DNA of 29,694 bases from Octopus sinensis (GCF_006345805.1 NW_021832894.1:1-29694), one strand, 5' to 3'. Counted from the stretch's first letter, positions 2-25,419 are shown. Notes: generated from the sequence alone by a model not told the origin. Made by a program: numbers and translations.

Positions 2-1245
<1,244 letters not shown>

Positions 1246-1260
1246 TATATAAAATACTTA

Positions 1261-1859
<599 letters not shown>

Positions 1860-1864
<5 letters not shown>

Positions 1865-3162
1865 GAATGCTCCTTATAAAATATGCTGTCTTCCTCTAGG
1901 TGATGAGAATATCAAAGACACTTCTGAATGTAGAGATTTCCTTCATGTCAACATGTTGTGATATTCTGAAATAGGAAAAGAAGCAGTAAGTTAAAACTGG
2001 ATAGTTGACCAACATAAGTAATTAAACATTGCAGAATTTACATCACTACCATTGTCATGCATTTACTGTCCATGCTTGCATAAGTAGATTGAGTTGGAAG
2101 GTGTTAGAAGCTAATGGGAATGAGCTATAGCCAAAACGAAAATATAGTGGGCATAACATGACCAGAGTAGTGAGTTGATGCCATCCAGAATTTCACAGAG
2201 CAAGTTGCCACAAGTGAAATGGGCTGTTATGAAGTGATCAGAGTTAATGATAAAGAAGCATTGTTACTCGTCTGCCGCCTTTCCGCTAACTAATTAAAAC
2301 TCCCACTTCTCTTCATGGATACTGAATTGCCCTCTAGGATCCAAACGAGCCCACCCTGATGGGCTGAAGAATGACATAGCAGACACATGCTATGTGTCAC
2401 AACTAAATAGCTTTCCTGACTTGCTACAATATTAAATACTGGCAGAATCACTAAGATGCCGGATTAATTGCTTAACAGCATTTCGTCGTAAATAGCTTTG
2501 TCAAACTAGAGATTATAGCAATCAGGAATGGGAGTGTGTCTGTGCATTGTTTATTTCTCTTCAATCAGGTACACACTGTGAGGGTGAGTACGATTGATCA
2601 TTTGAGCATCCAGATGCCCCTCCCACCTAACCACGAGTCCCTTCTCTGAAGACCAGCTTGCTAGCTAGCCCACAGTCTGTCAAAACTTGGTGCCTCAAAC
2701 GTCTTTCCGTTGAAAAAAAAAATTATTATTATTATCATCATCAACATTAATATTTTATAAACCACAAAAAGTAGAGTCGGCTCATCGAGCAAAACCCTGA
2801 CTCCAAATACATCTTACAATTTCATGAGTCCTTCATTAGAAAAAGGGACAACGGTAATTATTCTCTTTCCTCTCGCAGGTGTTACGACCACTCACGGAAA
2901 CGGAGACACACGTCTTTGTGAGCAGGAAGGATCTCCTCAGTAGAATCAATAGCTGCAAACCCTCTGAAGACCTCACAGGTTGTGTCCGAGTAGAATGGAT
3001 ATAATTCGCCTCTACCCATCTATAGACAGATTTTCTTGTGGGGTGCTTGTAAAGACAAGAACATTACATACGTTGGGGAGACATCTAGAAGCATTGCAGG
3101 GGGATGAAATAAAAATTAGAGGCAGCATGACCACATAACCAGTCCTCCATACTCTACCAAAG
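1860..3162 (+). repeat. Direct segmental duplicate of 9386-10837 (ZNF intron 3' part and terminal-exon start, units A and B)
   Basis: Colinear high similarity from TTCATGAATGCTCC to ACTCTACCAAAG; unit B has extra sequence at ~10200-10390. Confidence 0.9.
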
Positions 3163-4252
3163 ATGCTAATATATATATATAGTAGGTGCTAGTCGCGAAG
3201 ACTGAACCCGGTTTGGGCATCCGCGCTAGCCAGTCGTAGGTAGTCGAACCTACAGCGACTTGCATATGCAAATGAGCTGATTGGCGCAACATTGCAAAAA
3301 CTTAGTTACTAGCGAGCCCCTACTGAAGCTTAGGAAATATTTTTCAACGATATACGGTGTATATTATTTTAAAGACAATTGCGTTTTTTTTTTCGTTACA
3401 AAGCAATTAGAAGCACTGAAAAAAAAGCAAAACAACCTTAAGGACAGTCAAACATTTTTTTTTCAAAGTAGACCACTACAGGTGACAATTCACTTGTGTT
3501 AACTTTGAATAGCTACGGCAAACTGCAGCATGAAAATTCAAAAGAAAGTTTTAAAAAATTGGCTTAACCCCTCCCCAACAAGGTAATTTTACTGTAGGCA
3601 TCAACAGGAAAACCGGTTACTGGTGACAAGCCAACAACGTGGGGTCAGAATTTAGTTGCCAGCCAGATAGAGGAAGGGTAGTACAGTGACAGATCACAGA
3701 CGAAGATAACACTAATTGCCTCGTATGAAATGGTTCAGTGTCAACTTATGAGGCTCCTGTCAACGACCAAGTCACTTCAATGTAAACTTATAGTAACCAA
3801 ATTTCCCCCACGTAGAAATGAAACATTTCTATGAAGTAAAGGGTTACTTTACGTCTGGTTAAAAATAAACTCCTTTGATCAGGTCCGCACGACCAGGGCA
3901 GTGTTGGGACACTTCAGTTTAGAAGTTATTAATTAAGACGAGGTACGTTCTGAGTTCAAATTCCGTCGAGGCTGACTTTAACCTTTTATTACTTCTGGGT
4001 CGATAAATTAAGTACCAGTTAAATATTGGAGCCGTTGTAATCGACTATTGACCGCCCTCAAATTTCAGGTCTTGTATCTAAAGAAGAAAATATTATTTAA
4101 GACGAATTAATATATTTTCCTTATATTTTTATGTTTTCGCTTCGAAATGATTACTGTAACATCGAAAGATTCACAGAATTCTACGATTTACAATATTATT
4201 ATTAGTATTATTATCATCATTAAAGCCTTAAAGTAAATCTTTGTCAACTTAC
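1966..4252 (-). other. Predicted intron of ZNF unit A (Q-type first exon ends at 4253)
   Basis: Donor GAACAGG|GTAAGT at 4253/4252; acceptor TTTTCCTATTTCAG|AATATCAC at 1966/1965; the equivalent signals occur in units B, C and D. Confidence 0.6.
3942..4090 (+). mobile_element. 5'-truncated tRNA-derived SINE family 2 with 15-bp TSD
   Basis: B-box-like GAGTTCAAATTCC. TSD TATTA(A/T)TTAAGACGA at 3927-3941 and 4091-4105; the empty site is visible in the unit B intron near 11892. Confidence 0.85.
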
Positions 4253-4429
4253 CCTGTTCAGATAGAAACTGTGAGTCAGTTAATTAAGCACCTTAATTAA
4301 TAATTGGAGCTTGGTAGTGTAGAAGTTATTTCCCTTTGTATGATTGTATTTCTTGAATTCTCCAATAGATGTCTCTACTGACTGGTTGGATTCGTTCCAG
4401 CATTTTTGTCTGTTCCCTTATTTTAACTA

Positions 4430-4820
4430 CCAGTAGTGTAACCCGGCGTTGCTCGGGTTTGTTTCGACCCTTTAGAATTGGAATTTTTGAAAAGTAAAGA
4501 TGTTGCATAATGTAGCTTCTTATTCTCTTTAAGTAAACATTTCTCTGTTTGAAATACACCGAGAAATGTCGACACAACAGTAAAAAAATCGTAAAATATA
4601 GTGATTTTCATAGAAAAAGAGGCACCTTTTTGATGTAAACTATTTTTGGTGTTAACATGGTCTGATTTGAATTTTATCTTCTACGGAATGAAGAGCAAGC
4701 CATCTTCTATCATACTCTCAATTTTGGTCAACTTGCTCCGCAGGGTCTTGGAGGAGATAGTGTTAGTTGAAGGCTACCAAACCTGCCATACACAGACAAC
4801 TTCAGCTTTATACACAGAGA
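4430..4820 (-). mobile_element. Non-autonomous Helitron (mirror of 20969-21364)
   Basis: 5' TC start, 3' CCCGAGCAACGCCGGG hairpin then CTGG (fits CTRR), inserted between A and T. Confidence 0.85.
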
Positions 4821-5068
4821 TTTCACTTTCAATTCTTTTTTTTTTAATTTTCACCAGGTCATTTTAAGAAAGTTTACTCATATATTCTGTTACAAAATAC
4901 CGGTCCCCTGATACAGGAACCATGCAATTGATTATTGGTGTAATTTATAGAGATTTTCATCTCAAATTGCCCACTGCCGGCCTCAATTTCATTATCTTCA
5001 CTGTAGAATATGTTATTTCCTAAATCTATTTCATCATCGTCAACTTCAATGTCGTCACCGTAAGACAT

Positions 5069-5737
5069 ACTCTTTTACTTATTTCAGTCATGTGACTGAG
5101 GCCATGCTGGAACACCGCCTTTAGTCGAGCAAATCGACCCCGGGACTAATTCTTTGTAAGCCTAGCACTTATTCTATCAGACACTTTTGTCGAACCGCTA
5201 AGATACAGGGACGTAAGCACACCAGCATCAGTTGTCAAGCATTTTTGGGGGGACAAACACAGACACACACACATATATATATATCAAAATAAGCAACAAG
5301 AATGACTACGGAAATTTGGTACAATAGTTTTACGCTACATCATTTTATTAAATATTGTAAGTATTACAACAGTTTTAAAATGTAGAGCACTCATCAGCCA
5401 ATTATAGAAACGATTGCACCAAATTACCAGAGTCATTCTTGTTGCTTATTTTGATTATAATCACCCCACAATTTTTTATGGATAACACCATACAAAATTC
5501 TGGTGCATCTAAATTAAGTACCATATTCATTGGAATCTAAATTTTTACTGAACTTATGTATATATATATATATATATGTATATACATATATTTCCATCTC
5601 CCAAATCTACACACATGGCTTTAGTCGGCCCGAGGCTATAGTAGAAGACACTTGGCCAAGATGCCACACAGTGGGACTGAACCCGGAATCATGTGGCTGG
5701 TAAGCAAGCTACTTACCACACAGCCACTCCTTAGCCT
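5069..5737 (-). mobile_element. tRNA-derived SINE family 1, split at its internal (TA)n by a MITE and ~110 bp of unassigned DNA
   Basis: Head GGAGTGGCTGTGTGGTAAG (A-box-like) and GGTTCAGTCCC (B-box-like); tail AAAAGAGT; flanked by AT on both sides. Confidence 0.85.
5283..5455. mobile_element. ~173-bp MITE with ~42-bp terminal inverted repeats
   Basis: ATCAAAATAAGCAACAAGAATGACT..AATTTGGT.CAAT pairs with ATTGCACCAAATT..AGTCATTCTTGTTGCTTATTTTGAT; TA-rich site, TSD ambiguous. Confidence 0.85.
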
Positions 5738-5913
5738 ATAATAATACTAACTTTTTCTATAAACATGCATTCACATCAGGGATTACCTACAACCAAACAG
5801 TCAAAAAATGCAGACAGGTTTGTTTGTGTGGTAAGGAACTTTCTTTCCAGCCTCATGGTTTGGAGTTCAATCCCAATGCAGAGCACATTGAGCAAGTGCT
5901 TTCAGCTATACCT

Positions 5914-6133
5914 ATTTCTTTATTACCCACAAGGGGCTAAACATAGCGGGGACAAACATAGGTATTAAGTCGATTACATCAACCCTAGTGCATAACTGGT
6001 CCTTAATTTATCGATCCCGAAAGGATGAAGAGCAAAGTTGAACTGTGCAGAATTTGAACTCACAATGTAAGGGCAGCCAAAATACCGCTAAACATTTCGC
6101 CCGACGTGCTAACGATTCTGCCAGCTCGCCGCC
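5914..6133 (-). mobile_element. SINE family 2 with 13-bp TSD
   Basis: Head GGCGGCGAGCTGGCAGAATCG; TSD TTCAGCTATACCT at 5901-5913 and 6134-6146. Confidence 0.85.
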
Positions 6134-6161
6134 TTCAGCTATACCTCGCTTTAACCAAAGT

Positions 6162-6290
6162 CATCATCATTATAATCATTTAATGTCCGTTGTCCAAGTT
6201 GACATGGTTCGGACGGCTTGACCATGACTGGGGGTGATTTGGCATGGTTTCTACTGCTGGATGACCTTATCTAACACCAACCACTCTGCT
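6162..6290 (-). mobile_element. Decayed RTE-type 3' tail fragment (mirror ~18875-19018)
   Basis: CATCATCAT..TTTAATGTCCG..TTTCTAC.GCTGGATG.CCTT..AAC.CCAACC resembles the RTE 3' end at 19811-19950. Confidence 0.6.
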
Positions 6291-6999
6291 TTTATGTGAC
6301 CTCAGAGTCTGACAGAACTACGAATTTACTTGGCTTCATGGCCTTCACAAGCAAGATATAATACAAAAGGTCTGAGTTATTCATCATTGTCTCTGTGAGG
6401 CCAAACACTTGAAAGGTCCTTCCACACACCATCGACATTAGCTACTTTGCCGCCGTTCAAGAATTGGAACTGGAGATCGCCATTTCCAATGACTTCAAGG
6501 GCCACCTCCCAGTGGAATCAGGCGTCAACAAAGAGCCCTCGTCTACAAGACGACCAAATTTTTTTGTTTTTTCCAAGGTCTGGGCTCTCCCTCCCCTAAG
6601 CCCTAGACCATCGCCTAATCACCCTTACCCGGAGAAAGAAATACAAAAGGCCTTACCTGTTGACCTAGGTGGGATGAGCAATCACTGTCAAGAAATAAAC
6701 ATGTCCTTGCATGCTGCTGTCTCTCCTTGAACTTCCTGCCCATGCATGCCCCGTGGCTGTTCCTCCGGCCCCTGCAGTCTTCACTTCTGTCTACCTCATC
6801 TGCAATCCTCTCCACCAACACCACATAGCTCATCACAGCCCATAACACACCACACTATACATGCTTTCTTCCTCAAAATTTTAATGTCTGTGTTCCATAC
6901 AGGCATATGTTGGATAGTTGACCAGAGCTGACAAAGCCATGAGTTGCACCAGTTTCCTTGTCTGATTTGGCTTTTCTACAGCAGAATGCATTTCCTAAT

Positions 7000-7382
7000 A
7001 CTCTTACTCTTGACTCTTTTACTTGTTTCAGTCATTTACTGTGGCCATGCTGGGCACCACCTTTTAGTCGAGCAAATCGACACCAGGACTTATTCTTTGT
7101 AAGCCTAGTACTTATTCTATCAGTCTCCTTTGCTGAACCACTAAGTAATGGGGAGGTGAACGCACCAGCATCGGTTGTCAAGCGATGTTGAGAGGACAAA
7201 CACATATATATATATATATGACGGGCTTCTTTCAGTTTCCGTCTACTGAATCCACTCACAAGGCTTTGGTCAGCCCGAGGCTATAGTAGAAGACACTTGC
7301 CCAAGGTGCCACGCAGGGGGACTGAATCCGGAACCGTGTGGTTGGTACGAAAGCTACTTACCACACAGTCACTCCTATGCCT
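7000..7382 (-). mobile_element. Full-length SINE family 1 (mirror of 17274-17657)
   Basis: A/B-box-like head, internal (TA)n, (AAGAGT)n-like tail, AT on both flanks. Confidence 0.9.
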
Positions 7383-7782
7383 ATGTCAACCCTTTTTACA
7401 GAGAGCAACTGGGTGTTTGTTTTTATGGGACACCATCACCAGTGCTGCTGAGTTGGCACTAGTACCTGTGCTTATAATATGAGCCCCTTATCCATGCATT
7501 TTACGTGTCACCACCATCAATGCTTCTTTTTGTGTCATCTCATCACCAGTGCTTGTGATATGGGTCCAGCATCAGCACAATTGCCTTTTTCCTGGGACCC
7601 TCACCAGCGAATTCTATGTGACAACAAAACTGACATGGTCCTCAAGGACCTTGCAAGACAAAATAGCTGAAAACTGGCAGGGTAGTATTGAAGGGACGTC
7701 ACCTTGTGCCAGTTGACAGGTTTAAGGTACAAAGGGAACAGGGTCCAGATATAGTGCAAAAAAACAAGCACAAAATAAATAT

Positions 7783-7802
7783 TTTATTCATTATTCTTTA
7801 TT
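7783..7802 (-). terminator. Tandem AATAAA polyadenylation signals of ZNF unit B
   Basis: TTTATT at 7797-7802 and 7783-7788 on the plus strand, with a U/GU-rich tract downstream on the minus strand. Confidence 0.55.
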
Positions 7803-8147
7803 AAGAAATTCCTATAACTGATGAAAGGAAAAAGCCTGTGTTTTAGCAGACCAATTAGTGTTAATTATTGTTATGACTTAATAAATTTTGACATTGAGAC
7901 AGTAACACGTCTCTGTGAATACCCACATGTTTATGCATGTGGCTTTTTCGAGAGAATCATTTGCCACACGTCACACTGACATGGCTACTCTCATGTAGGG
8001 ATTCGTTCATGGACAGTTAAGTTAGGGTCTATGAGAGAATGCTTTAACACAGACACGACCATTACATAGGTTGTGTCTGGTATGAACATTTTCATGTGTA
8101 GTTACAACACCATTTGCAAAAAATGAATTACAACAACTAATGCGGGA

Positions 8148-9195
<1,048 letters not shown>

Positions 9196-9489
9196 TTTGA
9201 GAGAATTACTTATCATACACTTCACAATGATAAAGTGTTTTCATTTCCATGAATACATTTCTGTTCACTTTTGTCACTTCATTCAGATAACAATTTAATG
9301 CAATGTTTCTTCCATACATTCCACAGAATGAAAAATATTCCGCTGTCTCTTGTTATAGACTGTTTATTTATTACGAGGTAGATTATTCATGAATGCTCCT
9401 TACAAATAACTGTCTTCCTTTAGTGTGATGAGAATATCAAAGACACTTCTGAATAGAGAGATTTCCTTAACGTCAAATGTTGTGATATT

Positions 9490-12032
9490 CTGAAATAGGA
9501 AAATAGCAGTAAGATAAAACTGGATTGTTGCCAACATAAGTAATTCAACATTACAGATTTTATATCACTACCATTGTCATGCATTTACTGTCCATGCTTG
9601 CTAAGTAGATTGAGTTGGAAGGGGTGTTAGAAGCTAATGGGAATGGAGCTAGCAAAACGATAATATAGTGGGCATAACATGACCAGAGTAGTGAGTTGAT
9701 GCCATCCAGAATTTCACAGAGCAAAGTTGCCACAAGTGAAATGGGCTGTTTATGAAGTGATCAGAGTTAATGATAAAGAAGCATTGTTACTTGTCTGCCG
9801 CCTTTCCGCTAACTAATTAAAACTCCCACTTCTCTTCATTGGCACTGAATTGCCCTCTAGGATCCATACGTGCCCACCCTGATGGGCTGGAGAATGTCAT
9901 AGCAGAACAGTGCTATGGTGTGACAACTAAAATAGCTTTCCTGACTTGCTACAATATTAAATACTGCAGAATCACTAAGATGCCGGATTAATTGCTTAAC
10001 AGCATTTCGTTCGTAAATAGCTTTGTCAAACTAGAGATAAAAGCAATCAGGAATGGGAGTGTGTCTGTGCATTGTTTATTTCTCTTCAATCAGGTACACA
10101 CTGTGAGGGCGAGTACGATCAATCATTTGAGCATCCAGATGCCCCTCCCACCTAACCACAATCCCTTCTCTGAACACCAGATTGCTAGCTAGCCCACAGT
10201 GAAGGTCCCTCTTTATATTTCGTCTGTCATAAGTTGGTGCCCCAAACGTCTTTCCTTTCAAAGCATGACTTCCACTGAGGTCGACTTTCATCCTTTCGAA
10301 GTAAATAAAATAAGCAGTAGAGCACTCGAGTCCCTGAAATTAACTCGTCCCCTTTCTACAAATTTCAGGTTTTGTAATTAAAAATACAAAAAGAAAAATC
10401 ATTATTATTATTATCATCAACATTAATATTTTATAAACCCCAAAAAGTAGTCGGCTCATGGAGCAAAATCCTGACTGCAAATACATCTTACAATTTCATG
10501 AGTCCTTTATTAAAAAAAGGGACAATGGTAATTATTCTCCTTCCTCTCGCAGGTGTTACGACCACTCACGGAAACGGAGACACACGTCTTTGTGAGCAGA
10601 AGGATCTCCTCAGTAGAATCAATAGCTGCAAACCATCTGAACACCTCACAGGTTGTGTCCGGGTAGAATGGATATAATTCGCCTCTACTCATCTATAGAC
10701 AGAGATTTTCTTGTGGGGTGCTTGTAAAGACAAGAACATTACATACGTTGGTGTGACATCTAGAAGCATTGCAGGGGGATGAAATAAAAATTAGAGGCAG
10801 CATGACCACATAACCAGTCCTCCATACTCTACCAAAGGTACTACTCAAAAAGAATGGTCCCGGTGCGCGCACTCGTGCTAGTCCGTCGTGACTGGTCGAT
10901 CCGTCAACGACTACCTAACGCGAGTACGCAAATTAACAGATGCGCGTATAATAATATATGTATATAATGGCTGAATATATATCAAATAAAATGGGTTTTG
11001 CCTTAAACAAAGTAAATAAAAGACTCAACAAAAGAAATTACTTACTTTGTGTTTTATTTTCTTTGTTTAAAAAAAGTTATTTGTTAAAAAAAAAACCTCA
11101 TACATGTCTAGCGCAGGCGAGTGTGATTTTTAGTCGCGCACTCGCGTTACGTAATCTTTGTAAGATCGACAAGTCACGACTAGCTAGCACCGGGACCACG
11201 CTTGTAGAAAAGTACCCATATGTATAAGCATAAATACATATATTAATAAAAGAATTACTTACATAATCCAAATGTCCGTAGTATATATATATACATGTAT
11301 GTATAAGCATAAATACCTATATGTATATACGTGTATATTCATGCAAGCTGCCGCATACAGACACATGCACAGCAACAAACAAAAAGAAACAGCTCCAATA
11401 ATGGACATGGTCAAGAACCAGTGAAGAGGTTGCAAGAATTAAGGAATATTTTAGAAAATAAATAAATGAACGGTCCTCAAAAGTAACCCCCGAATTGTTT
11501 TCCCCCAAAATTCCTACCTTCTCGGAATCTATATCGTCCGAGGTATATTTGTAGAAAATTCATTTAAAAATATAACATTTCTTGAAAGTTAAGAAGAATT
11601 GAAGTTCACGCGCCGCTGAATTTTCCAAAACTCCTCACACCAAAAGCACTTTCCTACAAATTTTTGTATATTCGGAACTACGTACTATAACAAATATTCG
11701 TAGAATATTTAATTAAGTTACGATCATCCAAAGTGGTGGGGCATGAATCTGTAGTTATGCCGCTTCTCCGTTCGTTTTTACTCGTTAATCAAACGTTTTC
11801 TTCTCATTTTACAAATAAATTTCCTCTATATCACATCTAACAGCCGATAATAGGTTTCAGAAACAACAAACCAACATTTCAGTTTGGAAGTTATTATTTA
11901 AGACGAGGGAATATATTTTCCTAAAGTTTTTATGTTTTCGCTTCGAAATAATTACTGTGACACCGAGAAGTTTACAGAATTCTATTAATTACATTGTTAT
12001 TAGTAGTATTAGTATCATCATTGTCAACTTAC
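9490..12032 (-). other. Predicted intron of ZNF unit B (P-type first exon ~12110-12033)
   Basis: Donor GAATACG|GTAAGT at 12033/12032; acceptor TTTTCCTATTTCAG|AATATCAC at 9490/9489. Confidence 0.65.
10837..11216. mobile_element. MITE with imperfect TIRs and subterminal inverted repeats
   Basis: GGTACT..TGGTCCCGGTGC..GTCGTGACT.GTCGATC pairs with GATCGAC.AGTCACGAC..GCACCGGGACCA..AGTACC; inner TAACGCGAGT(A/G)CGC also pairs. No TSD found. Confidence 0.75.
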
Positions 12033-12140
12033 CGTATTCAGAGAAAAACTGCGAATCACAGACCGATAATTAATTAGTCTATTTAATAATAATGATGTTA
12101 ATTACAAAGCACCTTGCACACACGGGAAGCCAGTAAGTAT

Positions 12141-12174
12141 ATGACGTCATCAAGAGTCAAAGCGCGCCTTCCGG
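12141..12174. promoter_or_regulatory. Candidate core promoter: CRE palindrome plus ETS-like site
   Basis: ATGACGTCAT at 12141-12150, GCGCGC, and CTTCCGG at 12168-12174. It lies between the divergent first exons of B and C, and the CRE is conserved in the copy at 1380. Confidence 0.5.
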
Positions 12175-12399
12175 GGCCGATCCATCAACGGCAGGAATTA
12201 TTTCCCTTCATTTCATAGTATTTCTTCCTTCATCTCTGGCCCCGATTTGCTGTCTTACTTCAGATATCTTCTAAAGAGCAAGATGGGGTCGGAGAGAAAG
12301 ACCCCTGCCACCGAATGAACGAAAAACGATGGAATTTGTGGAGAAAGGTGGGAACCCAGCTTAATCATTGATAAATCTTTATTATAATCTACGATTGTA

Positions 12400-13005: not shown

Positions 13006-13216
13006 TTTCTTTACTACCCACAAGGGGCTAAACACAGAGGGGACAAACAAGGGATTAAGTCTATTATATCGACACCAGTGTTTCACTGGTACTTAATTTA
13101 TCGACCCCAAAAGGATGAAAGGCAAAGTCGACCTCAGCGGAATTTGAACTTAGAACGTAGCGGCAGACGAAATACTGCTAAGCCTTTCGCCCGGCGTGCT
13201 AACCTTTCTGCCAGAT
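13005..13216 (-). mobile_element. SINE family 2, near full length
   Basis: Same head and body as 5914-6133; the head is interrupted by the MITE at 13225. Confidence 0.85.
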
Positions 13217-13224
13217 CCCCAAGA

Positions 13225-13669
13225 GGCGATGTTTCGCTTGTCGTAGCACAAGTTTCCGTCGATTTCCGTAAAAAATGTAAACACTGAATCGGCCATACAT
13301 ACACACATACATACACACACACACATACATAGATACATACACACACACATACATGCAGACATACATATACACATACACCGAGTAAAAAATTTCAGTTATC
13401 TCTTTCTTTCACACATTACTCTCTCTGTCTCTTCACACACACTAACAGAAGCACTTCACTTACACAACATACTGTCTGTCTCCCACACCCCATCAAACAC
13501 ACACACACATGTACATCAATGCTTTCCATGCACGGTAACTTCAAAAGAACTTCCCTCGTCATACAATCGCTTTCTCTTAGTCTCTTTCGCTCTCATTACT
13601 TATGTAAAAAAATAAAAGTTTTTTACGGAAATCGACGGAAACTTGTGCTACGACAAGCGAAACATCGCC
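13225..13669. mobile_element. 445-bp MITE with perfect 51-bp TIRs and 8-bp TSD (Merlin-like)
   Basis: TIRs 13225-13275 and 13619-13669 are exact reverse complements. TSD is CCCCAAGA / CGCCAAGA (1 mismatch). The GGCGA start fits the GGNRM terminus I recall for Merlin; the superfamily call is tentative. Confidence 0.85.
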
Positions 13670-13877
13670 CGCCAAGATCCTCATGATCGTAATAAAGATT
13701 CCATTTCATAGTAGTTCTCTAATTCTCTCATAGATGGCTCTACTGACTAGTGGCTTCCTTTCAGTTTCTCTCTTAGTTTCATTCTGTTAATATCTGTATT
13801 GTGTGTCAAGGCGCTCATTATTATTAATTAGACTAATTAGTTATCGGTCTGTGATTTGCTGTTTTTGTCTGAATACG

Positions 13878-14321
13878 GTAAGTTGACGATGATGATAATA
13901 ATACTACTAATAACAATGTAATTAATAGAATTCTGTGAACTTCTCGGTGTCACGGTAATTATTTCGAAGCGGAAACATAAAAACTTTAGGAAAATATATT
14001 TCCTCGTCTTAAATAATAACTTCCAAACTGAAATGTTGGTTTGTTGTTTCTGAAAACCTATGATCGACTGTTCACGAACGAAATGCTGTTAAGCAAATTC
14101 TGGATGGCATCAACTCACTACTCTGGTCATGTTATGCCCACTATATTTTCGTTTTGGCTAGCTCCATTCCCATTAGCTTCTAACACCTTCCAACTCAATC
14201 TACTTATGCAAGCATGGACAGTAAATGCATGACAATGGTAGTGATATAAAATCTGCAATGTTGAATTACTTATGTTGGTCAACTATCCAGTTTTATCTTA
14301 CTGCTTCTTTTCCTATTTCAG
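13878..14321 (+). other. Predicted intron of ZNF unit C (P-type first exon ~13800-13877)
   Basis: Donor GAATACG|GTAAGT; acceptor TTTTCCTATTTCAG|AATATCAC; shortened by internal deletions relative to B. Confidence 0.7.
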
Positions 14322-14717
14322 AATATCACAACATGTTGACATGAAGGAAATCTCTACATTCAGAAGTGTCTTTGATATTCTCATCACCTAAAGGAAAACA
14401 GTATATTTATACGGAGCATTCATGAATAAGTCTACCTCTGTATATAAATACAGTCTATAACAAGGAACAGCGGAATATTTTTCTTTCTCTGGAATGTGGA
14501 GGAGGTGATTGCTTTCCTGGTGAATTAAAGTTGGATAAATTTACAAAGGAGTTGACAATTTCCATCTGCTGTTTTAGATATCGAGTAAGATCGTGGATGG
14601 AAGAAAGATTGCATTAAATAATTCTCTGCATGAAGTGACACGACGGAACAAAAACATATTCATAGAAAGGAAAAACACATTATCTTTGTGATATGTATGA
14701 TAAGTAATTCTCTCATA

Positions 14718-15347
14718 ATGAATAATTTAAGTAAACCAGAAATCCCCAACACAGAGGATAAGGTATATAATTGTAATATCTGTGGTAAATCCTTCCTTCA
14801 GTATCGTTACTTAACTTATCACCAACGTACACATACAGGAGAGAAGCCATATCACTGTGATATCTGTGGTAAATCATTCTCTTATAATTGTCATTTGGTT
14901 ACTCACAAACGCGTTCACACGGGAGAGAGACCCTATTATTGTGATATCTGTGGTAAATCATTCTGTGAACGTACAGTTTTGACGAAACATAAGAAGATTC
15001 ATACTGGTGAAAAACCATATCAGTGTGATATCTGTGGTAAATCATACTCTCGTAATAGTCAATTGGTTAGTCACAATCGCACTCATACAGGAGAAAGACC
15101 ATTTAATTGTGATATCTGTGGTAAATCATTCTGTGAACGTAAAGTTTTAACTAACCATAAGAAGATTCATACTGGTGATAAACCATATCATTGTGATATC
15201 TGTGGTAAATCATTCTCTCAGAGTGGTAGTGTCACTACACACAAACGTACACATACAGGAGAAAAACCTTATCATTGTGATATCTGTGGTAAATCATTTT
15301 CTCAAGGTAATCACTTGACTAATCACAAACTTACACATACATGGTAG
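14718..15347 (+). CDS. ZNF unit C: 209-aa protein with 7 tandem C2H2 fingers and no effector domain
   Basis: ATG at 14718 (MNNLSKPEIPNTEDKVYNC..), homologous to the ATGs of B and D; 7 C-x2-C-x12-H-x3-H units with TGEKPY-type linkers; ends HTW*. Confidence 0.85.
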   Translation: MNNLSKPEIPNTEDKVYNCNICGKSFLQYRYLTYHQRTHTGEKPYHCDICGKSFSYNCHLVTHKRVHTGERPYYCDICGKSFCERTVLTKHKKIHTGEKPYQCDICGKSYSRNSQLVSHNRTHTGERPFNCDICGKSFCERKVLTNHKKIHTGDKPYHCDICGKSFSQSGSVTTHKRTHTGEKPYHCDICGKSFSQGNHLTNHKLTHTW

Positions 15348-15543
15348 AGACCATATCATTGTGATATCTGTGGTAAACCATTCTCTCAAAGTAGTGACTT
15401 GACTATCATTGGTAAATCATTCTCTCAAAAGAAACACTTGATTATGCACAGTCGTATATATACACGAGAGAAGCCATATCTTTGTTTTATCTGGTAAATC
15501 ATTCTCTCAAAGGAGTCATTTGGCTTATCACAAACTTACACAT

Positions 15544-16323
15544 AGGCGTAGGAGTGGCTGTGTGGTAAGCAGCTTGTTTACCAACTACATGGTTCCGGGT
15601 TCAGTCCCACTGCGTGGCACCTTGGGCAAGTGTCTTCTACTAGAGCCTCGGGCCGACCAAAGCCTTGTGAGTGGATTTGGTAGACGGAAACTGAAAGACG
15701 CCCATCGTATATCTCTATCTCTATATATATAAACGGCAGTTTGTCTGTGCGTGTTTCTGTGTGTCTGTTTTCTTGTACCCTCACCCTGACCACGGCTTTC
15801 AACCGATTCTGATGAAACTTGACACACACATAGCCCAATGTCATAATTCAAAACTATCGCAGCGAAAATTTTGAAAAGTTCCCCCAGTTCTGAAAAAAAT
15901 CGATAAATTCGACATGGGGTCGACAATCAGAAACACAAACCACAGGGGACGCAACTCGACCTTTTTAACTATCAAAAAAAAATTTACCATCATTTTTTTC
16001 CCCATTTTTTTTCTATTTGTTGGCTATAACTCTCTAAAAATGCTTTATAGTTATTTCCCTTACAAACCCGAGCAACGCCGGGCGATACTGCTAGTATGTA
16101 TATATATGTGTGTGTATATTTTTGTGTGTCTGTGTTTGTCCCACCAACATTAATTGACAACCGATGCTGGTGTGTTTACATCACCGTAACTTAGTGGTTC
16201 AGCAAAAGAGACCGATAGAATCAGTACTGGGCTTACAAAGAATAAGTCCTGGGGTCGATTTACTCGACTAAAGGCGGTGCTCCAGAATGGCCAAAGTCAA
16301 ATGACTCAAACAAGTAAAAGAGT
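15544..16323 (+). mobile_element. SINE family 1 inserted in a decayed finger linker, split by a Helitron
   Basis: TGGCTGTGTGG and GGTTCAGTCCC boxes; AT at 15542-43 and 16324-25; removing it restores CACAT-AAGGGAGAG (H-T/K-G-E linker). Confidence 0.9.
15712..16094 (+). mobile_element. Non-autonomous Helitron
   Basis: A|TCTCTATCTCTATATATATAAA start; CCCGAGCAACGCCGGG hairpin at 16067-16082; CTAG|T end at 16091-16095; no TSD. Confidence 0.9.
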
Positions 16324-16849
16324 ATAAGGGAGAGAAACTATATCATTGTAATTACTGTGCTAAATCATTTGCCCTTAATTGTCATTTGGTTATCACAAAC
16401 GTGTTCATACAGGAGAGAAACCTTGTCACTGTTTTGTTTATGGTAAATCTTTCTCTCAAATTAATCACTTCACTAATAAGACACATGTGGGGGAGAAGCC
16501 ATAATCCTGCATTAGTTGTTGTAATTCATTTTTTGCAAATGGTGTTGTAACTACACACGAAAATGTTCATACCAGACACAACCTATGTAATGGTCGTGTC
16601 TGTGTTAAAGCATTCTCTCATAGACCTAACTTAACTGTCCATGAACGAATCCCTACATGAGAGTAGCCATGTCAGTGTGACATGTGTGGCACATGATTCT
16701 CTCGAAAAAGCCACATGCATAAACATGTGGCTATTCACAGAGACGTGTTACTGTCTCAATGTCAAAATTTATTAAGTCATAACAATAATTAACACTATTT
16801 GCTCTGCTAAAACACAGGCTTTTTCCTTTCATCATTATAGGAATTTCTT

Positions 16850-16869
16850 AATAAAGAATAATGAATAAA
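16850..16869 (+). terminator. Tandem AATAAA polyadenylation signals of unit C
   Basis: AATAAA at 16850-16855 and 16864-16869, followed by TATTTATTTTGTGCTTGTTTTTTTG. Confidence 0.55.
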
Positions 16870-17273
16870 ATATTTATTTTGTGCTTGTTTTTTTGCACTA
16901 TATCTGGACCCTGTTCCCTTTGTACCTTAAACCTGTCAACTGGCACAAGGTGACGTCCCTTCAATACTACCCTGCCAGTTTTCAGCTATTTTGTCTTGCA
17001 AGGTCCTTGAGGACCATGTCAGTTTTGTTGTCACATAGAATTCGCTGGTGAGGGTCCCAGGAAAAAGGCAATTGTGCTGCTGCTGGACCCATATCACAAG
17101 CACTGGTGATGGTGATGAGATGACACAAAAAGAAGCATTGATGGTGGTGACACGTAAAATGCACGGATAAGGGGCTCATATTATAAGCACAGGTACTAGT
17201 GCCAACTCAGCAGCACTGGTGATGGTGTCCCATAAAAACAAACACCCAGTGCTCTCTGTAAAAGGGTTGACAT

Positions 17274-17657
17274 AGGCATAGGAGTGACTGTGTGGTAAGT
17301 AGCTTTCGTACCAACCACACGGTTCCGGATTCAGTCCCCCTGCGTGGCACCTTGGGCAAGTGTCTTCTACTATAGCCTCGGGCTGACCAAAGCCTTGTGA
17401 GTGGATTCAGTAGACGGAAACTGAAAGAAGCCCGTCATATATATATATATATGTGTTTGTCCTCTCAACATCGCTTGACAACCGATGCTGGTGCGTTCAC
17501 CTCCCCATTACTTAGTGGTTCAGCAAAGGAGACTGATAGAATAAGTACTAGGCTTACAAAGAATAAGTCCTGGTGTCGATTTGCTCGACTAAAAGGTGGT
17601 GCTCCAGCATGGCCACAGTAAATGACTGAAACAAGTAAAAGAGTCAAGAGTAAGAGT
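17274..17657 (+). mobile_element. Full-length SINE family 1
   Basis: As 7000-7382; the empty paralogous site GTTGACAT-TAGGAAATG is at 24047-24063. Confidence 0.9.
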
Positions 17658-18028
17658 ATTAGGAAATGCATTCTGCTGTAGAAAAGCCAAATCAGACAAG
17701 GGAAACTGGTGCAACTCATGGCTTTGTCAGCTCTGGTCAACCTATCCAACATATGCCTGTATGGAACACAGACATTAAATTTTGAGGAAGAAAGCATGTA
17801 TAGTGTGGTGTTATGGGCTGTGATGAGCTATGTGGTGTTGGTGGAGAGGATTGCAGATGAGGTAGACAGAAGTGAAGACTGCAGGGGCCGGAGGAACAGC
17901 CACGGGGCATGCATGGGCAGGAAGTTCAAGGAGAGACAGCAGCGTGCAAGGACATGTTCATTTCTTGACAGTGATTGCTCATCCCGCCTAGGTCAACAGG
18001 TAAGGCCTTTTGTATTTCTTTCTCCGGT

Positions 18029-18790
18029 AAGGGTGATTAGGTGATGGTCTAGGGCTTAGGGGCGGGAGAGCCCAGACCTTGGAAAAAACAAAAAAACTTT
18101 GGTTCTTTTGTTGTATTTGAGGAATCTTTGTTGACGCCTGATACCACTGGGAGGTGGCCCTCTTAGTCGCTGGAACTGGAGATCCCCAGGTCCAAATTCT
18201 TGAACTGTTGGGGTTAGTGTTGGTGTTGGTGGTGATGGCAGAGAGAGGTGGCAGCAGTGACAGGAACAGCAATGGTGGCAGTAGCAGCGAAGGTGATGCC
18301 AGCAGTGGCGATGGTGAAAGCGGCAGTGCTTGTTGGTGCTGGTGTTGCTAAGCAACAAGACGGGTAAAGGTGATTAGGTGATGGTCTAGGGCTTAGGGTC
18401 GGGAGCCCCAGACCTTGGAAAAAAAGGGATTTTTGTTGACGCCTGACACCCATGGGAGGTGGCCCTCGAAGTCGTTGGAAATGAGATCTCCAGGTCCAAT
18501 TCTTGAACGGCGGCAAAGTAGCTAATGTCGATGGTGTGTGGAAGGACCTTTCAAGTGTTTGACCTAAGGGTGATTAGGTGATGGTCTAGGGCTTAGGGGC
18601 GGGAGACCCCAGACCTTGGAAAAAACAAAAAAACTTTGGTCGTCTTGTAGTCGAGGGATCTTTGTTGACTCCTGACACCACTGGGAGGTGGCCCTCGAAG
18701 TCGCTTGAAAAGGAGATCTCCAGGTCCAATTCTTGAAAGGCGGCAAAGTAGCTGATGTCGATGGTGTGTGGAAGGACCTTTCAAGTGTTT
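18029..18790. repeat. Tandem triplication of a ~200-225 bp unit with a low-complexity insert at ~18205-18362
   Basis: AAGG(G)TGATTAGGTGATGGTCTAGGGCTTAGGG starts at ~18029, ~18366 and ~18566; single copy in the left arm (~6405-6630). Confidence 0.85.
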
Positions 18791-19042
18791 GGCCTCACAG
18801 AGACAATGATGAATAACTCAGACCTTTTGCATTATATCTTGCTTGTGAAAGATATCAAACCAAGTAAAATCAGAGTGGCTGGTGTTAGATAAGATCATCC
18901 AGCAGTAGAAACCATGCCAAATCAGACCCAGTCTGGAGCAGCCTTCCAGTCCTGGTCAAACCGTCTGAACCATGTCAACTTGGACAACGGACATTAAGTG
19001 AGGATAATGATGATGACTTTGGTTAAAGCGAGGTATAGCTGA

Positions 19043-19450
19043 AGGTGGCGAGCTGGCAGAATCGTCAGCACGTCAGGCGAAATGCTTAGCGGTATTTTGG
19101 CTGCCGTTACATTCTGAGTTCAAATTCCACCGAGGCCGACTTTGCCTCTCCTCCTTTCGAGGTTGATTAAATAAGTACCAGTTATGCACTGGGGTCGATG
19201 TAATCAACTTAATCCATTTGTCTGTCCTTGTTTTTCCTCTGTGTTTAACCCCTTGTGGGTAGTAAAGTAATAGGTATTTCATCTGTCGTTATGTTATGAG
19301 TTCAAATTCCGCCCAGGTCGACTTTGCCTTTCATCCTTTCGGGGTCGATAAATTAAGTACCAGTTACGCACTGGGGTCGATGTAATCGACTTAATACCTA
19401 TGTTTGTCCCGTCTATGTTTAGCCCCTTGTGGGTTATAAAGAAATAGGTA
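19043..19450 (+). mobile_element. Head-to-tail dimer of SINE family 2 (full copy plus 5'-truncated copy)
   Basis: Two GAGTTCAAATTCC..GTCGAT(A/T)AA..AAGTACCAG..AATAGGTAT bodies inside one GGTATAGCTGAA TSD. Confidence 0.85.
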
Positions 19451-19621
19451 TAGCTGAAGGCACTTGCTCAATGTGCTCTGCATTGGGATTGAACCCTAAA
19501 CCATGAGGTTGGAAAGAAAGTTCCTTACCACACAAACAACCCTGTCTGCATTTTTTGACTGTTTGGTTGTAGGTAATCCCTGATGTGAATGCATGTTCAT
19601 AGAAAAAGCTATTATTGTTAT

Positions 19622-19781
19622 AGGCTAAGGAGTGGCTGTGTGGTAAGTAGCTTGCTTACCAACCACATGGTTCCGGGTTCAGTCCCACTACATAACACCT
19701 ACTATAGCCTTGGGCTGACTAAAGCCTTGTGAGTGGATTTGGTAGACAGAAAATGAAAGAAGCCCGTCGTATATATGTATG

Positions 19782-19812
<31 letters not shown>

Positions 19813-20739
19813 CATCATCGTTTAATGTCCGCTTTCCATGCTAGCATTGGTTGGACGGTGCAACTGAGGTCTGGGAAGCCAGAAGGCTGCACCAGGCCCA
19901 GTCTGATCTGGCAGTGTTTCTACGGCTGGATGCCCTTCCTAACGCCAACCACTCCATGAGTGTAGTGGGTGCTTTTTACATGCCAGATGAGGCTGGTGAA
20001 CGGCCACACTCTGCCACCGGCACGGAGGCCAGGCGAGGCTGGCAATGGCCACAATCGGATGGTGTTTGTTATGTGCCACCGGCACGGAGGCCAGGTGAGG
20101 CTGACAATGGCCACAATCGGATGGTGTTTGTTATGTGCCACCGGCACGGAGGCCAGTCGATGCGGCACTGGCTATGGCCACGTTTGGATGGTTCTCTTAT
20201 GTGCCACCGGAACTAGTATCACAACTTCAAATTCTATTGATGTTCATCGATTTCGATTTTCACTTGCCTCAACAGGTCTTCACAAGTAGAGTTTTGTGTC
20301 CCTAGAAGGAAGGTATGCACAGGTGGACTGACTACGTCCCAGGTAGAGGCCACGGGTTTCGGCCTCACTTGTCCTGCCGGGTCTTCTCACGCACATCATA
20401 CTTCCAAAGGTCTTGGTCTCTGGTCATTTCCCCGGTGAGACTTAATGAGCGAAGTTTGTGCTTCACCACTTCGTCCAGGTTTTCATGGGTCCACCTCTTC
20501 CACAGGTTCCCTCAACCACTAGGGTGTATATGTATGTTTGTGTGTCTGTGTTTGTCCCCACAACATTGCTTGACAACTGATGGTGGTGTGTTTACATCCC
20601 CGTAACATAGCGGTTCAGCAAAAGTGACTGATAGAATAAGTGCTAGGCTTACAAAGAATTAGTCCCGGGATCGATTTGCTCGACTAAAGGCGGTGCTCCA
20701 GCATGGCCACAGCCACATGACTGATACAAGTAAAAGAGT
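19622..20739 (+). mobile_element. SINE family 1 split by an RTE insertion
   Basis: Head 19622-19810, 3' half 20524-20739; AT at 19620-21 and 20740-41. Confidence 0.85.
19811..20523 (-). mobile_element. 5'-truncated RTE-clade LINE with 62-bp tandem repeats in its 3' UTR
   Basis: Minus strand encodes LVVEGTCGRG..KTWDEVVKH..LSLTGEMTRDQDLWKYDVREKTRQDK*; (ATG)n tail; TGCCACCGG units start at 20012, 20074, 20136 and 20202. Confidence 0.85.
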
Positions 20740-20968
20740 ATGTCTTACAGTGACGACATAGATATAGGAAATAACATATTCTACAGTGAAGATAATGAAA
20801 TTGAGGCCGGCATTAGGCAATTTGAGACGAAAATCTCTATAAATTACACCAATAACCAATTGCATGGTTCCTGTATCTGGGGACCGGTATTTTGTAACAG
20901 AATATATTAGTAAACTTTCTTAAAATGACCAGGTGAAAATTAAAAAAAAAACAGAATTGAAAGTGAAA

Positions 20969-21364
20969 TCTCTATGTGTATAAAGCTGAAGTTGTCTGTG
21001 TGTGGCAGGTTTGGTAGCCTTCAACTAACACTATCTCCTCCGAGACCCTGCAGTGCAAGATGACCAAAATTGAGAGTATGATAGAAGAAGGCTTGCTCTT
21101 CATTCCGTAGAAGATAAAATTCAAATCGGACTATGTTAACACCAAAATTATTTACATCAAAAAGGTGCTTCTTTTTTTTCCTATGAAAATCCCTATATTT
21201 TACGATTTTTTTACTGTTGTGTCGACATTTCTCGGTGTATTTCAACCAGAGAAATGTTTACTTAAAGAGAATAAGAAGCTACATTATGCAACATCTTTAC
21301 TTTTCAAAAATTCCAATTCTAAAGGGTCGAAACAAACCCGAGCAACGCCGGGTTACACTGCTGG
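20969..21364 (+). mobile_element. Non-autonomous Helitron just upstream of the unit D first exon
   Basis: A|TCTCTATGTGTATAAAGCTGAAG start; hairpin at 21337-21352; CTGG|T end. Confidence 0.85.
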
Positions 21365-21714
21365 TAGTTAATATAAGGGAACAGACTAAAGTGCTGGAAC
21401 GAATCCAAGCAGTCAGTAGAGACATCTATTGGAGAATTCAAGAAATACAATCATATAAAGGGAAGTAACTTCTACACTACATCAACCAAGCTCCATTATT
21501 AATTAAGGTGCTTAATTAGCGATCGCTGACTCGCAGTTTGGATCTGAACAGGGTAAGTTGACAAAGATTTACTTTAAGGCTTTAATGATGATAATAATAC
21601 TAATAATAATATTGTAAATCATAGAATTCTGTGAATCTTTCGATGTTACAATAATTATTTCGAAGCGAAAACATAAAAATATAAGGAAAATATATTAATT
21701 CGTCTTAAATAATA

Positions 21715-21863
21715 TTTTCTTCTTTAGATACAAGACCTGAAATTTGAGGGAGGTCAATAGTCGATTACATCGGCTCCAATATTTAACTGGTATTTAATTT
21801 ATCGACCCAGAAGGAATAAAAGGTTAAAGTCAGCCTCGACGGAATTTGAACTCAGAACGTACC
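21715..21863 (-). mobile_element. SINE family 2 with 15-bp TSD (mirror of 3942-4090)
   Basis: TSD at 21700-21714 and 21864-21878. Confidence 0.85.
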
Positions 21864-21964
21864 TCGTCTTAATTAATAACTTCCAAACTGAAATGTTGGT
21901 TTGTTGTTTCTGAAAACCTATGATCGGATGTTAGATGTGATATAGAGGAAATTTATTTGGGCAT

Positions 21965-22371
21965 TCCGTAACAAACTTTTTTTTTTTTACATATGGACTT
22001 GCGGGAACTTTTTGAAGTAATGAGAGCGAAAGAGACTAAGAGAAAGCGATTTTATGACGAGGGAAGTTCTTTTGAAGTTACCGTCCAGGGGAAGCATTGA
22101 TGTACATGTGTGTGTGTGTGTTTGATGGGGTGTGGGAGACAGACAGTATGTTGTGTAGGTGAAGTGCTTCTGTTAGTGTGTGTGAAGAGACAGAGAGAGT
22201 AATGTGTGAAAGAGAGAGATAACTGAAATTTTTTACTCAGTGTATGTGTATATGTATGTATGCATGTATTTGTGTGTGTATGTATCTATGTATGTGTGTG
22301 TGTGTGTATCTATGTATGTGTGTGTGTGTATGTATCTATATATGTGTGTGTGTGTATGTATGTATGGCCGA
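21965..22371 (-). mobile_element. TIR-less internal fragment of the 13225 MITE family
   Basis: Reverse complement of ~13290-13630. Confidence 0.85.
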
Positions 22372-22635
22372 GAAGAATATCTATTCATGAGAAGAATATC
22401 TCCACCTCATTTTATAACTCTCCCGTCTTTTTCTTACCAGTTCGCCATTGTCACATCAACAGAGACATTAAGGCTGCACAGTAGCAGTCGACAAGGCATG
22501 TATAACGATTAAATAAAAAAAATTTTGTCTATATCTTCGATCACTGTCATTATTCCATTGAGTCAACCTCATTATTTTCTACATAGCAGACCGTTACATA
22601 AATAGGCAAAGGTAATCTTTCGTTTTAACTCGAAA

Positions 22636-22885
22636 TAATGTAAACACTGAATCGGCCATACATACACACACACATACATACACACACACATACATACACA
22701 CACACATACATAGATACATACATATACACATACACCGAGTAAAAAATTTCAGTTATCTCTCTCTTTCACACATTACTCTCTCTGTCTCTTCACACACACT
22801 AACACAAGCACTTCACTTACACAACATACTGTCTGTCTCCCACACCCCATCAAACACACACACATGTACATCAATGCTTCCCCTG
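22636..22885 (+). mobile_element. Second TIR-less fragment of the 13225 MITE family
   Basis: Direct match to ~13273-13530. Confidence 0.85.
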
Positions 22886-23494
22886 CTATGACGAGTAACA
22901 ATGCTTCTTTATCATTAACTCTGATCACTTCATAAACAGCCCATTTCACTTGTGGCAACTTTGCTCTGTGAAATTCTGGATGGCATCAACTCACTACTCT
23001 GGTCATGTTATGCCCACTATATTATCGTTTTGGCTAGCTCCATTCCCATTAGCTTCTAACACCTTCCAACTCAATCTACTTATGCAAGCATGGACAGTAA
23101 ATGCATGACAATGGTAGTGATATAAAATCTGCAATCTTTGATTACTTATGTTGGTCAACTATCCAGTTTTATCTTACTGCTTCTTTTCCTATTTCAGAAT
23201 ATCACAACATTTGACGTTAAGGAAATCTCTCCATTCAGAATTGTCTTTGATATTCTCATCAACTAAAGGAAGACAGTATATTTATAAGGAGCATTCATGA
23301 ATAAGTCTACCTCTGTATATAAATACAGTCTATAACAAGGAACAGCGAAATATTTTTTCTTTCTGTGGAATGTATGGAAGAAACATTGCATTAAATTGTT
23401 ATCTGAATGAAGTGACAAAAGTGAACGGAAATGTATTCATGGAAATGAAAAACACTTTATCATTGTGAAGTGTATGATAAATAATTCTCTCAAA

Positions 23495-23959
23495 ATGAAT
23501 AATTTAACTGAATCAGAAAATCTTGATAAAGAGGAAAAGCCATATCACTTGAATATCTGTGGAAAATCATTTTCTTACAGTAGTGACGATGTTAGACACA
23601 AACTTACACATACGGGAGAGAAGCAATATTATTGTGAGATCTGTGGTAAATCATTCTCTTGTAATAGTAATTTGGTTGATCACAATCGCATTCATACAGG
23701 AGAGAAACCATATCATTGCGATATCTGTGGTAAATCATTCTCTCGAAGTAGTCAATTGACTAGGCACAAACGTATTCATACGGGAGAGAGACCTTATCAT
23801 TGTGATATCTGTGGTAAATTATTCTCACTATATAATCACTTGACTAGCCACAGACTTACACATACAGGAGAGAAGCCATATCATTGCGATATCTGTGGTA
23901 AATCTTTCTCTCAAAGTCATCAATTGACTAATCACAAGCGTACAAACCTGTCAAAGTGA
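23495..23959 (+). CDS. ZNF unit D: 154-aa protein with 3 canonical C2H2 fingers and 2 atypical ones
   Basis: ATG in AAAATG context ([18 protein letters not shown]..). The first unit lacks the first Cys and the last lacks the final His; the C-terminus NLSK* comes from flank DNA joined by a deletion. Confidence 0.8.
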   Translation: MNNLTESENLDKEEKPYHLNICGKSFSYSSDDVRHKLTHTGEKQYYCEICGKSFSCNSNLVDHNRIHTGEKPYHCDICGKSFSRSSQLTRHKRIHTGERPYHCDICGKLFSLYNHLTSHRLTHTGEKPYHCDICGKSFSQSHQLTNHKRTNLSK

Positions 23960-25410: not shown

Positions 25411-25419
25411 ATCTGGCTC

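Follow-up and report, generated by a model that had tools for sequence, protein, structure and literature searches.

Mosaic units, probably patched by gene conversion, in a decaying palindromic C2H2 zinc-finger cluster of Octopus sinensis

The ampliconic palindromes of the human Y chromosome are an example of interlocus gene conversion within inverted duplications, and the clustered protocadherin and UGT1 loci carry variable first exons with their own promoters, whose combination is a matter of alternative splicing or of the promoter used in a single transcription unit. Lineage-specific expansions of C2H2 zinc-finger (ZNF) genes in octopus were reportedly described by Albertin et al. in 2015 in terms of copy number, phylogeny and expression. 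A survey of the cephalopod C2H2 expansion deals with copy number, phylogeny and expression, and makes no mention of gene conversion, recombination, exons or pseudogenes (PMC12513265). Vertebrate KZFP clusters undergo recombination, duplication and finger turnover, and hold many pseudogenes (PMC5363842). Here we describe a 29,694-nt stretch of Octopus sinensis DNA (GCF_006345805.1 NW_021832894.1:1-29694; hereafter the window, with positions counted from its first letter), which is part of an octopus-type C2H2 poly-zinc-finger cluster and contains four related ZNF units, A to D.

Each unit follows, in whole or in part, the same plan. A short, non-coding first exon ends ...G|GTAAGTTGA and is followed by an intron and an acceptor, TATTTCAG|AATATCAC; about 370 nt of 5' untranslated region (5'UTR) then lead to a start codon and finger array in the same exon. 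There is no KRAB or other effector domain, and the protein begins about 20 residues ahead of the first finger. Units A (first-exon type Q) and B (type P) lie on the minus strand, and units C (P) and D (Q) on the plus strand. An initial annotation had also assigned two terminal-exon types, X to A and C and Y to B and D, and proposed that recombination within the shared intron combines regulatory modules and DNA-binding arrays, thereby diversifying ZNF expression and specificity. In our analysis the four units are probably mosaics that arose by repeated non-reciprocal ectopic recombination (interlocus gene conversion) in a decaying palindromic ZNF cluster, and not by a working mixing of promoters and arrays; the mosaic pattern is a by-product of concerted evolution.

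Conflicting relationships along the four units

Two segments carry the central conflict: s1, comprising the exon-1 module and 190 bp of intron, and s3, comprising the last ~225 bp of intron and the first ~105 bp of exon 2. In s1, all 25 informative quartet sites group A with D and B with C (AD|BC), with none for AC|BD and no other informative pattern; identity is 96.7% for A-D and 94.5% for B-C, and 81-82% between P and Q units (0.824 for B-D). In s3, all pairs are 94-97% identical (0.96-0.97 for every pair in the B/C/D triplet), and five sites (14148, 14335, 14341, 14343 and 14356) give AC|BD against one for AD|BC. The terminal branches in this segment are long for A and B (11 and 12 changes) and short for C and D (2 and 4). 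The two segments differ by Fisher's test (p = 3.5e-5, or 0.008 with the patch described below counted as one event), with bootstrap values of 100% for AD|BC in s1 and 89% for AC|BD in s3. Site patterns among B, C and D are likewise heterogeneous across segments (chi-square 87.8, p = 9e-17). Adjacent segments of these paralogs thus conflict, as in mosaics, and the four-gamete conflict between the exon-1 module (AD|BC) and the exon-2 start (AC|BD) bears out the earlier claim that a simple duplication tree is insufficient.

The exchange had been placed inside the shared intron, which holds for one boundary. A single sharp change-point falls there, exactly at the target site of a short interspersed element (SINE), where P-Q identity rises from 81-82% to 96-100%: the last AD|BC sites lie at 14001-14003, the target-site duplication (TSD) starts at 14004, and the next 18-98 bp past the SINE site are 96-100% alike in B, C and D. 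The array-side split, in contrast, lies in exon 2. There, B and D separate from C 140 bp downstream of the X/Y patch, at a 98-bp indel (C 14498-14595). B and D share 96.5-97.7% identity from exon-2 part b through finger 1, whereas C is 77-81% identical to either (0.79 for B-C and 0.77 for C-D over this stretch in the triplet comparison, against 0.965 for B-D). This high-identity block extends over only about 0.3 kb and ends at finger 1; from finger 2 onward, B and D are 83% identical in register, and single fingers reach 89-93% out of register. The interior of B is therefore foreign, being D-like from exon-2 part b through finger 1, while B is C-like in its first-exon module and again from ~8135 outward, so that an internal tract has partner-like sequence on both sides. 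The proposal that whole arrays were swapped as cassettes does not survive these data: the X/Y patch sits in a core homogenised among all four units, and the B-D block stops at finger 1.

Polarity was read from comparison units at two loci, one in O. sinensis (CM016873.1, L001) and one in O. vulgaris (OX597842.1, L002), both reached via N-terminal protein matches. The 98-bp segment is present in these outgroup units, and B and D therefore share a derived deletion; an insertion in C was considered for this segment and rejected, since the outgroups show the ancestral state. B and D also share many (dozens of) derived substitutions in non-coding 5'UTR sequence. In the exon-1 module, P-Q identity is 77-79%, about equal to that between Q and the O. 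vulgaris or O. sinensis units, while in the exon-2 module the window units are 91-96% alike and 70-76% identical to the outgroups. These identities point to a core that is young or homogenised and to first-exon modules that are old. A 1.3-kb intron block found only in A and B supplied a further candidate signal, AB|CD; as C and D lack the block through different breakpoints, it was not accepted as a shared derived character. Among the O. vulgaris units (v3k/v4k, v9k, v16k, v20k/v24k) there are hints of similar discordance: in the exon-1 module and at the exon-2 start no two units are closer than v4k and v24k (90.7% and 93.2%, respectively), whereas in exon-2 part b v4k is 84% identical to v9k and 79.5% to v24k.

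The strings on which the X and Y types were based are where they had been reported, with X in A and C at 1940-1956(-) and 14331-14347(+), and Y in B and D at 9465-9480(-) and 23207-23222(+). The 20-residue peptide attributed to B and D is also common to both, although in B it is readable only through a frameshift. X and Y are nevertheless not terminal-exon types, but alternative states of a 22-bp patch; the core around it is 94-97% alike across the four units, and the states differ at four places within the 22 bp and at one further site 190 bp upstream. By outgroup polarity, Y carries the G deletion and C at 14356 as derived states, and X carries G at 14343 and A at 14356; the outgroup units vary as well at 14341, a CpG. 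The X/Y split is genuine, but limited to 22 bp. The X patch contains two upstream ATGs, one opening a 3-codon and the other a ~16-codon upstream open reading frame, and the first of these ATGs is present in the outgroup units. The Y patch has no upstream ATG, the G deletion removing the first and a G-to-T change the second.

Architecture and condition of the units

High-identity self-matches within the window form one colinear inverted chain (1860-8330 with 23301-16329, and 11839-12095 with 14072-13815). The resulting palindrome spans 1860-23301, pairs A with D and B with C, and has a spacer of ~1.65 kb. Its arms are 92-95% identical, carry private transposable-element (TE) indels, and comprise at least six colinear inverted blocks with coordinate sums of 24660-25911, the signature of an inverted duplication. 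The left-arm intergenic block (6455-8135) has its partner at ~16525-18205, and BLAST gives 94.5% over the whole 6455-8330 match. The last fingers of B fall within that match and were considered as part of the partner-like block; direct alignment rejected this, showing partner-like sequence only from ~8135 outward. Correspondingly, the degenerate array tail on the C side (16329-16740, plus strand), separated from the C array by SINE copies at 15540-16325, resembles the B tail only from ~16525 outward.

The first-exon modules agree well with the earlier description. The P donor GAATACG|GT was found in B and C at 12031-12039(-) and 13871-13879(+), and the Q donor GAACAGG|GT in A and D at 4251-4259(-) and 21546-21554(+); none of the P, Q, X and Y diagnostic strings is expected by chance. 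The P-type module of B (12033-12163, minus strand) has the reported cAMP-response element (CRE), TGACGTCA, at 12142-12149, ~110 bp 5' of the donor. In C, only a remnant of the P-type module is left (13815-13877, plus strand): homology to B and to module E, described next, stops ~60 bp 5' of the donor, and the CRE-bearing upstream region is lost. Four units had been counted, and their four donors were placed correctly, but a fifth first exon, of P type and with its own CRE, was overlooked. This isolated module, E (1260-1402, minus strand), recovered by donor and CRE scans and alignment, is 91% identical to B 12020-12163, with its donor at 1265-1281 and its CRE (TGACGTCA) at 1381-1388; a long interspersed element (LINE) fragment cuts it ~6-20 bp into the intron.

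The Q-type module of A with its upstream region (4253-5281, minus strand) is the palindromic partner of the corresponding region of D (20527-21552, plus strand), with 92.7% identity over 1393 bp. A Helitron had been reported upstream of Q, but the repeat there is the 3' half of a ~380-bp tRNA-like SINE family (5067-5277 and 20527-20740); we found no Helitron evidence upstream of Q and no helicase open reading frame (ORF) among those of the window, the search for Helitron termini not having been exhaustive. We also weighed matches to GAACAGGGT at 7736 and 16908 as further Q exons, but self-BLAST gave no homology to the Q exon-1 module there, and we rejected them; they are one chance match doubled by the palindrome.

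In the A intron (1966-4252, minus strand), the shared core takes up 1966-2272; a block that only B has as well (2273-3162), A-private sequence (3163-3908) and the SINE (3941-4090), with TSD copies at 3927-3940 and 4091-4104, are also present. The D intron (21553-23197, plus strand) carries the same SINE at 21715-21863, between TSDs at 21700-21714 and 21864-21878, followed by a foldback TE (22015-22886) and the shared core (22890-23197). As previously noted, this SINE of the Q intron, ~149 bp and common to A and D, is flanked by a 15-bp TSD (TCGTCTTAA[A/T]TAATA), and the empty (single) site is kept in B, C and the O. vulgaris units, which identifies an insertion. The empty site lies at 11892-11905 in the B intron (9490-12032, minus strand); the short C intron (13878-14321, plus strand) lacks ~2.1 kb relative to B.

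Splice signals are shared by all four units, with the donor CTGAA(TAC/CAG)G|GTAAGTTG and the acceptor TATTTCAG|AATATCACA. Across the 8-9 units compared from the window and the two Octopus loci, the donor GGTAAGTTG and the acceptor AG|AATATCA are invariant, whereas the flanks are 70-80% identical, and the O. vulgaris gene model P0122 is spliced precisely at the conserved acceptor CAG|AATATCA. By these signals, exon 1 would be spliced to exon 2. Stops occur in every frame of exon 2 ahead of the MNNL start, so 5'UTR is the best reading of exon 1 together with the initial ~370 nt of exon 2. P0122 itself (L002 16090-16177) begins within one ZNF unit and runs into the next, where it ends in the 5'UTR exon-2 module; this suggests read-through or chimeric transcripts, or chimeric gene models, between neighbouring units.

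The claim that all four combinations of first exon and finger exon are present implies that every unit has both exons in one orientation, which fails for A. Its exon 2, which begins at 1965 next to the acceptor, is a 106-bp stub (1860-1965, minus strand), and beyond 1860 the homology to B, C and D gives way to an inverted, frameshifted array fragment (L1-L4 plus tail) at 1433-1864 on the plus strand, joined to the stub via the microhomology TTCAT. The proposed combination of Q with X in A is thus not a gene, and the array fragments beside A are B/D-like and not C-like, with best matches of 90-96% (L4 to B11, 96.4%; L2 to B7, 91.7%; L1 to B10, 90.5%). A finger at 1-78 matches B5 at 94.9% and D2 at 92%, and any C finger at 86% or less; the left end of the window cuts through this structure.

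In B, the 5' part of exon 2 (9149-9489, minus strand) lacks the 98-bp segment. A 12-residue N-terminus is followed by a 1-bp deletion and three finger blocks in shifted frames. The array (8082-9148, minus strand) holds ~13 finger units in three reading frames, and the three frameshifts, with a stop after the last good finger, mark it as an apparent pseudogene. Exon 2 of C (14322-15544, plus strand) retains the ancestral 98-bp segment and an intact ORF of seven fingers (14688-15347), with degenerate fingers after it. Exon 2 of D (23198-23959, plus strand) lacks the 98-bp segment; in its ORF (23465-23959), the first finger has no first Cys, as in B, and the last is cut before the His pair, at ~23945, where homology to the flank downstream of C starts. 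C alone is intact, and three of the four units are disabled.

Mechanism and competing explanations

That recombination or conversion between paralogs is required, as the initial annotation had held, follows from the s1/s3 conflict and from the 98-bp deletion shared by B and D. The likeliest course is as follows. Two old unit lineages would have existed, and a SINE would have inserted into the Q intron. The core would then have been homogenised between P and Q units, with the SINE as its 5' limit. Two tandem units, an inner P and an outer Q, would have been duplicated in inverted orientation, giving the palindrome. Subsequently, either exon 2 and the array of B would have been overwritten by a D- or A-like copy, or those of C by a copy from outside the window, and a separate micro-conversion would have produced the X/Y patch. 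In later decay, the introns of C and D would have lost sequence, TEs would have inserted, the junction at 1860 would have formed, B would have become frameshifted and D truncated. Conversion tracts would stop at large indel heterologies, namely the SINE and the 98-bp indel.

A crossover route, in which homologous inversions between the opposed palindrome cores physically swapped first exons and arrays, would have an ideal substrate in four cores 94-97% identical, with A and B inverted relative to C and D, and the junction at 1860 is that of a non-homologous inversion or deletion. Taking a symmetric palindrome (Q+Y, P+X | P+X, Q+Y) as the starting point, we worked through all series of inversions between cores of opposite orientation; 12 arrangements can be reached, and none reproduces the order and orientation found here, Q,P|P,Q with downstream types X,Y|X,Y. 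Moreover, the first exon and the distal tail of B are both C-like and flank the discordant block, the signature of a non-crossover tract. Because inversions fail to yield the layout and B is partner-like on both sides of a foreign interior, non-crossover gene conversion is the best explanation, and the crossover route is very unlikely. Dispensing with recombination altogether is the least probable course. The X/Y sites would then be recurrent or hypermutable, and the differences in similarity would reflect lineage-specific rates, such as a fast C array. Finger helices do evolve fast, the core has only five AC|BD sites, and one of them is the CpG at 14341 noted above as variable in outgroups. 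Nonetheless, the derived deletion and dozens of derived substitutions shared by B and D lie in non-coding 5'UTR and not in finger-helix codons, both X and Y show two or more derived states inside 22 bp, and identity shifts abruptly at indel boundaries, with the significant chi-square heterogeneity reported above.

An assembly artefact, whether a misjoin, a collapsed repeat or a haplotype switch, could in principle create both apparent mosaics and a palindrome in so repetitive a region (84-bp finger repeats, many SINE copies, microsatellites), and the B frameshifts could be indel errors. It is unlikely, however, as the arms are 5-8% diverged and carry private TE insertions and deletions, well beyond allelic divergence and unlike fold-back chimeras; the discordant blocks are bounded by indels that outgroup units carry too, and each patch state is common to two units and unique to none. 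Selection for the pairing of promoters and first exons with DNA-binding arrays, as first proposed, does account for two first-exon and two downstream lineages in discordant combinations, for splice sites that are invariant in both modules across paralogs and three genomes, and for the intronic position of one change-point; the presence of two upstream ATGs in X and none in Y means that the patch could change translation. This proposal nevertheless seems quite improbable, given the missing array of A past its stub, the three frameshifts of B, the truncation of D and the loss from C of the P upstream region with its CRE. In addition, the B-D block is ~0.3 kb long with 83% identity from finger 2, the X/Y patch is uncoupled from array type, and the array fragments beside A resemble B and D rather than C. 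With three of four units disabled and no whole array exchanged, an adaptive combinatorial reading is unsupported at this locus. An equally doubtful extension is that exchange of first exons or promoters and of N-termini or fingers is frequent across octopus ZNF expansions and selectable, with TE heterologies bounding the modules and the X/Y upstream ATGs tuning translation.

Several observations weigh against gene conversion as set out here. The AC|BD signal of the core consists of the five sites listed, four of them within 22 bp and one a CpG, and a cluster of B-private changes at 9340-9385 falls within the putative B-D tract. Overwriting of B by D or A and overwriting of C by an outside copy are about equally parsimonious assignments of recipient and donor. 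That tracts end at indels for a causal reason is our inference from a coincidence, and conservation is the sole ground for calling the first exon an exon. Assembly errors, the frameshifts of B among them, may also be present.

Surroundings of the cluster and comparison with described systems

Apart from its units, the window is eukaryotic and TE-rich, with a G+C content of ~33-49%. The ~380-bp repeat family, which combines a tRNA-like end with an internal CA/TA microsatellite, is present in at least eight copies or fragments (5067-5277, 5591-5739, 7007-7386, 15540-15712, 16108-16325, 17270-17650, 19620-19790 and 20524-20742) and in many copies, 82-91% identical, at both comparison loci. Rfam and ARAGORN made no calls over the window, and the tRNA-like head of the SINE is therefore too degenerate for these tools. 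The foldback-type element in the D intron has a (CATA)n core and an inverted pair (22086-22318 and 22885-22657), and a related copy at 13270-13601 lies immediately 5' of the first-exon remnant of C. LINE reverse-transcriptase fragments occupy 79-1259 and 27975-29635 (Pfam RVT_1 at 189-938(+) and 28588-29220(-)). The left fragment is 91% identical to L002 18893-19515, and its 3' end adjoins module E, the position of which could reflect 3' transduction. Long (TG)n and (ATGT)n microsatellites at 26090-27270 produce several spurious ORFs of 100-170 aa on both strands. Intergenic segments of the palindrome arms at 17990-18800, 6325-6630 and 20012-20210 are G+C-richer (46-49%) and contain internal direct repeats of ~140-230 bp and a 62-bp tandem repeat.

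The finger arrays are of the Krueppel type, with tandem C-x2-C-x12-H-x3-H fingers, TGEKP linkers and a periodicity of 84 bp; Pfam finds zf-C2H2 (E = 3e-35) and zf-H2C2_2 (E = 5e-58) in unit C. Full-length ZNF protein queries gave mostly generic finger matches, and an N-terminal query was more informative: 20 of its 21 matches, the best ones included, are proteins of O. vulgaris, O. sinensis or O. bimaculoides or unnamed entries, at 45-69% identity. The ORFs of C and D, each taken with two alternative starts, gave no record in an exact-product database look-up. At both comparison loci the non-coding modules of the window units are present at 72-80% identity, and exon-1 module, acceptor module, N-terminus (MN.L...) and array follow in unchanged order; the SINE families of the window are there in many copies (82-95% identity). 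The assignment of the window to an octopus-type C2H2 poly-zinc-finger cluster, made on sequence grounds, follows from these ordered modules and shared SINE families.

Among octopus C2H2 expansions, this locus is typical in that its closest N-terminal matches are all Octopus and its unit plan recurs on O. sinensis and O. vulgaris chromosomes at 72-80%. The fine-scale mosaic structure seen here is absent from the account given in the cephalopod survey (PMC12513265). If the gene-conversion reading is correct, the window offers a base-level example of how the very large C2H2 families of octopus evolve, in which duplication of whole units, at times as palindromes, is followed by patching through gene conversion. 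A tree of one part of such a gene would therefore mislead about another, and many copies would be pseudogenes, which bears on paralog counts, orthology calls and the dating of cephalopod ZNF expansions; no new mechanism would be revealed.

The vertebrate C2H2/KRAB clusters, such as those on human chr19 and the mouse KZFP clusters (PMC5363842), resemble the window in local duplication, in pseudogenes and partial units intermixed in TE-rich surroundings, and in traces of recombination, of fingers gained and lost, and of arrays shifted in register. They differ from it in that the octopus units have no KRAB or effector domain, the upstream exon is non-coding and the lineage is cephalopod. The protocadherin and UGT1 clusters serve as an analogy for the combinatorial idea only, through alternative first exons, each under a promoter of its own, that lead into common downstream sequence; the octopus locus is not of that kind, since each unit has its own downstream exon and the combinations come from recombination at the DNA level over evolution. 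Y-type palindromes share with the window high-identity inverted arms, patches of discordant ancestry, internal tracts amid partner-like flanks and tract ends at heterologies. Unlike in those palindromes, the octopus tracts link non-partner units (A-C and B-D) and do not homogenise the arms, which are 5-8% diverged and decaying. The locus is a new, well-resolved case of a known process, in a lineage where that process has not been dissected.

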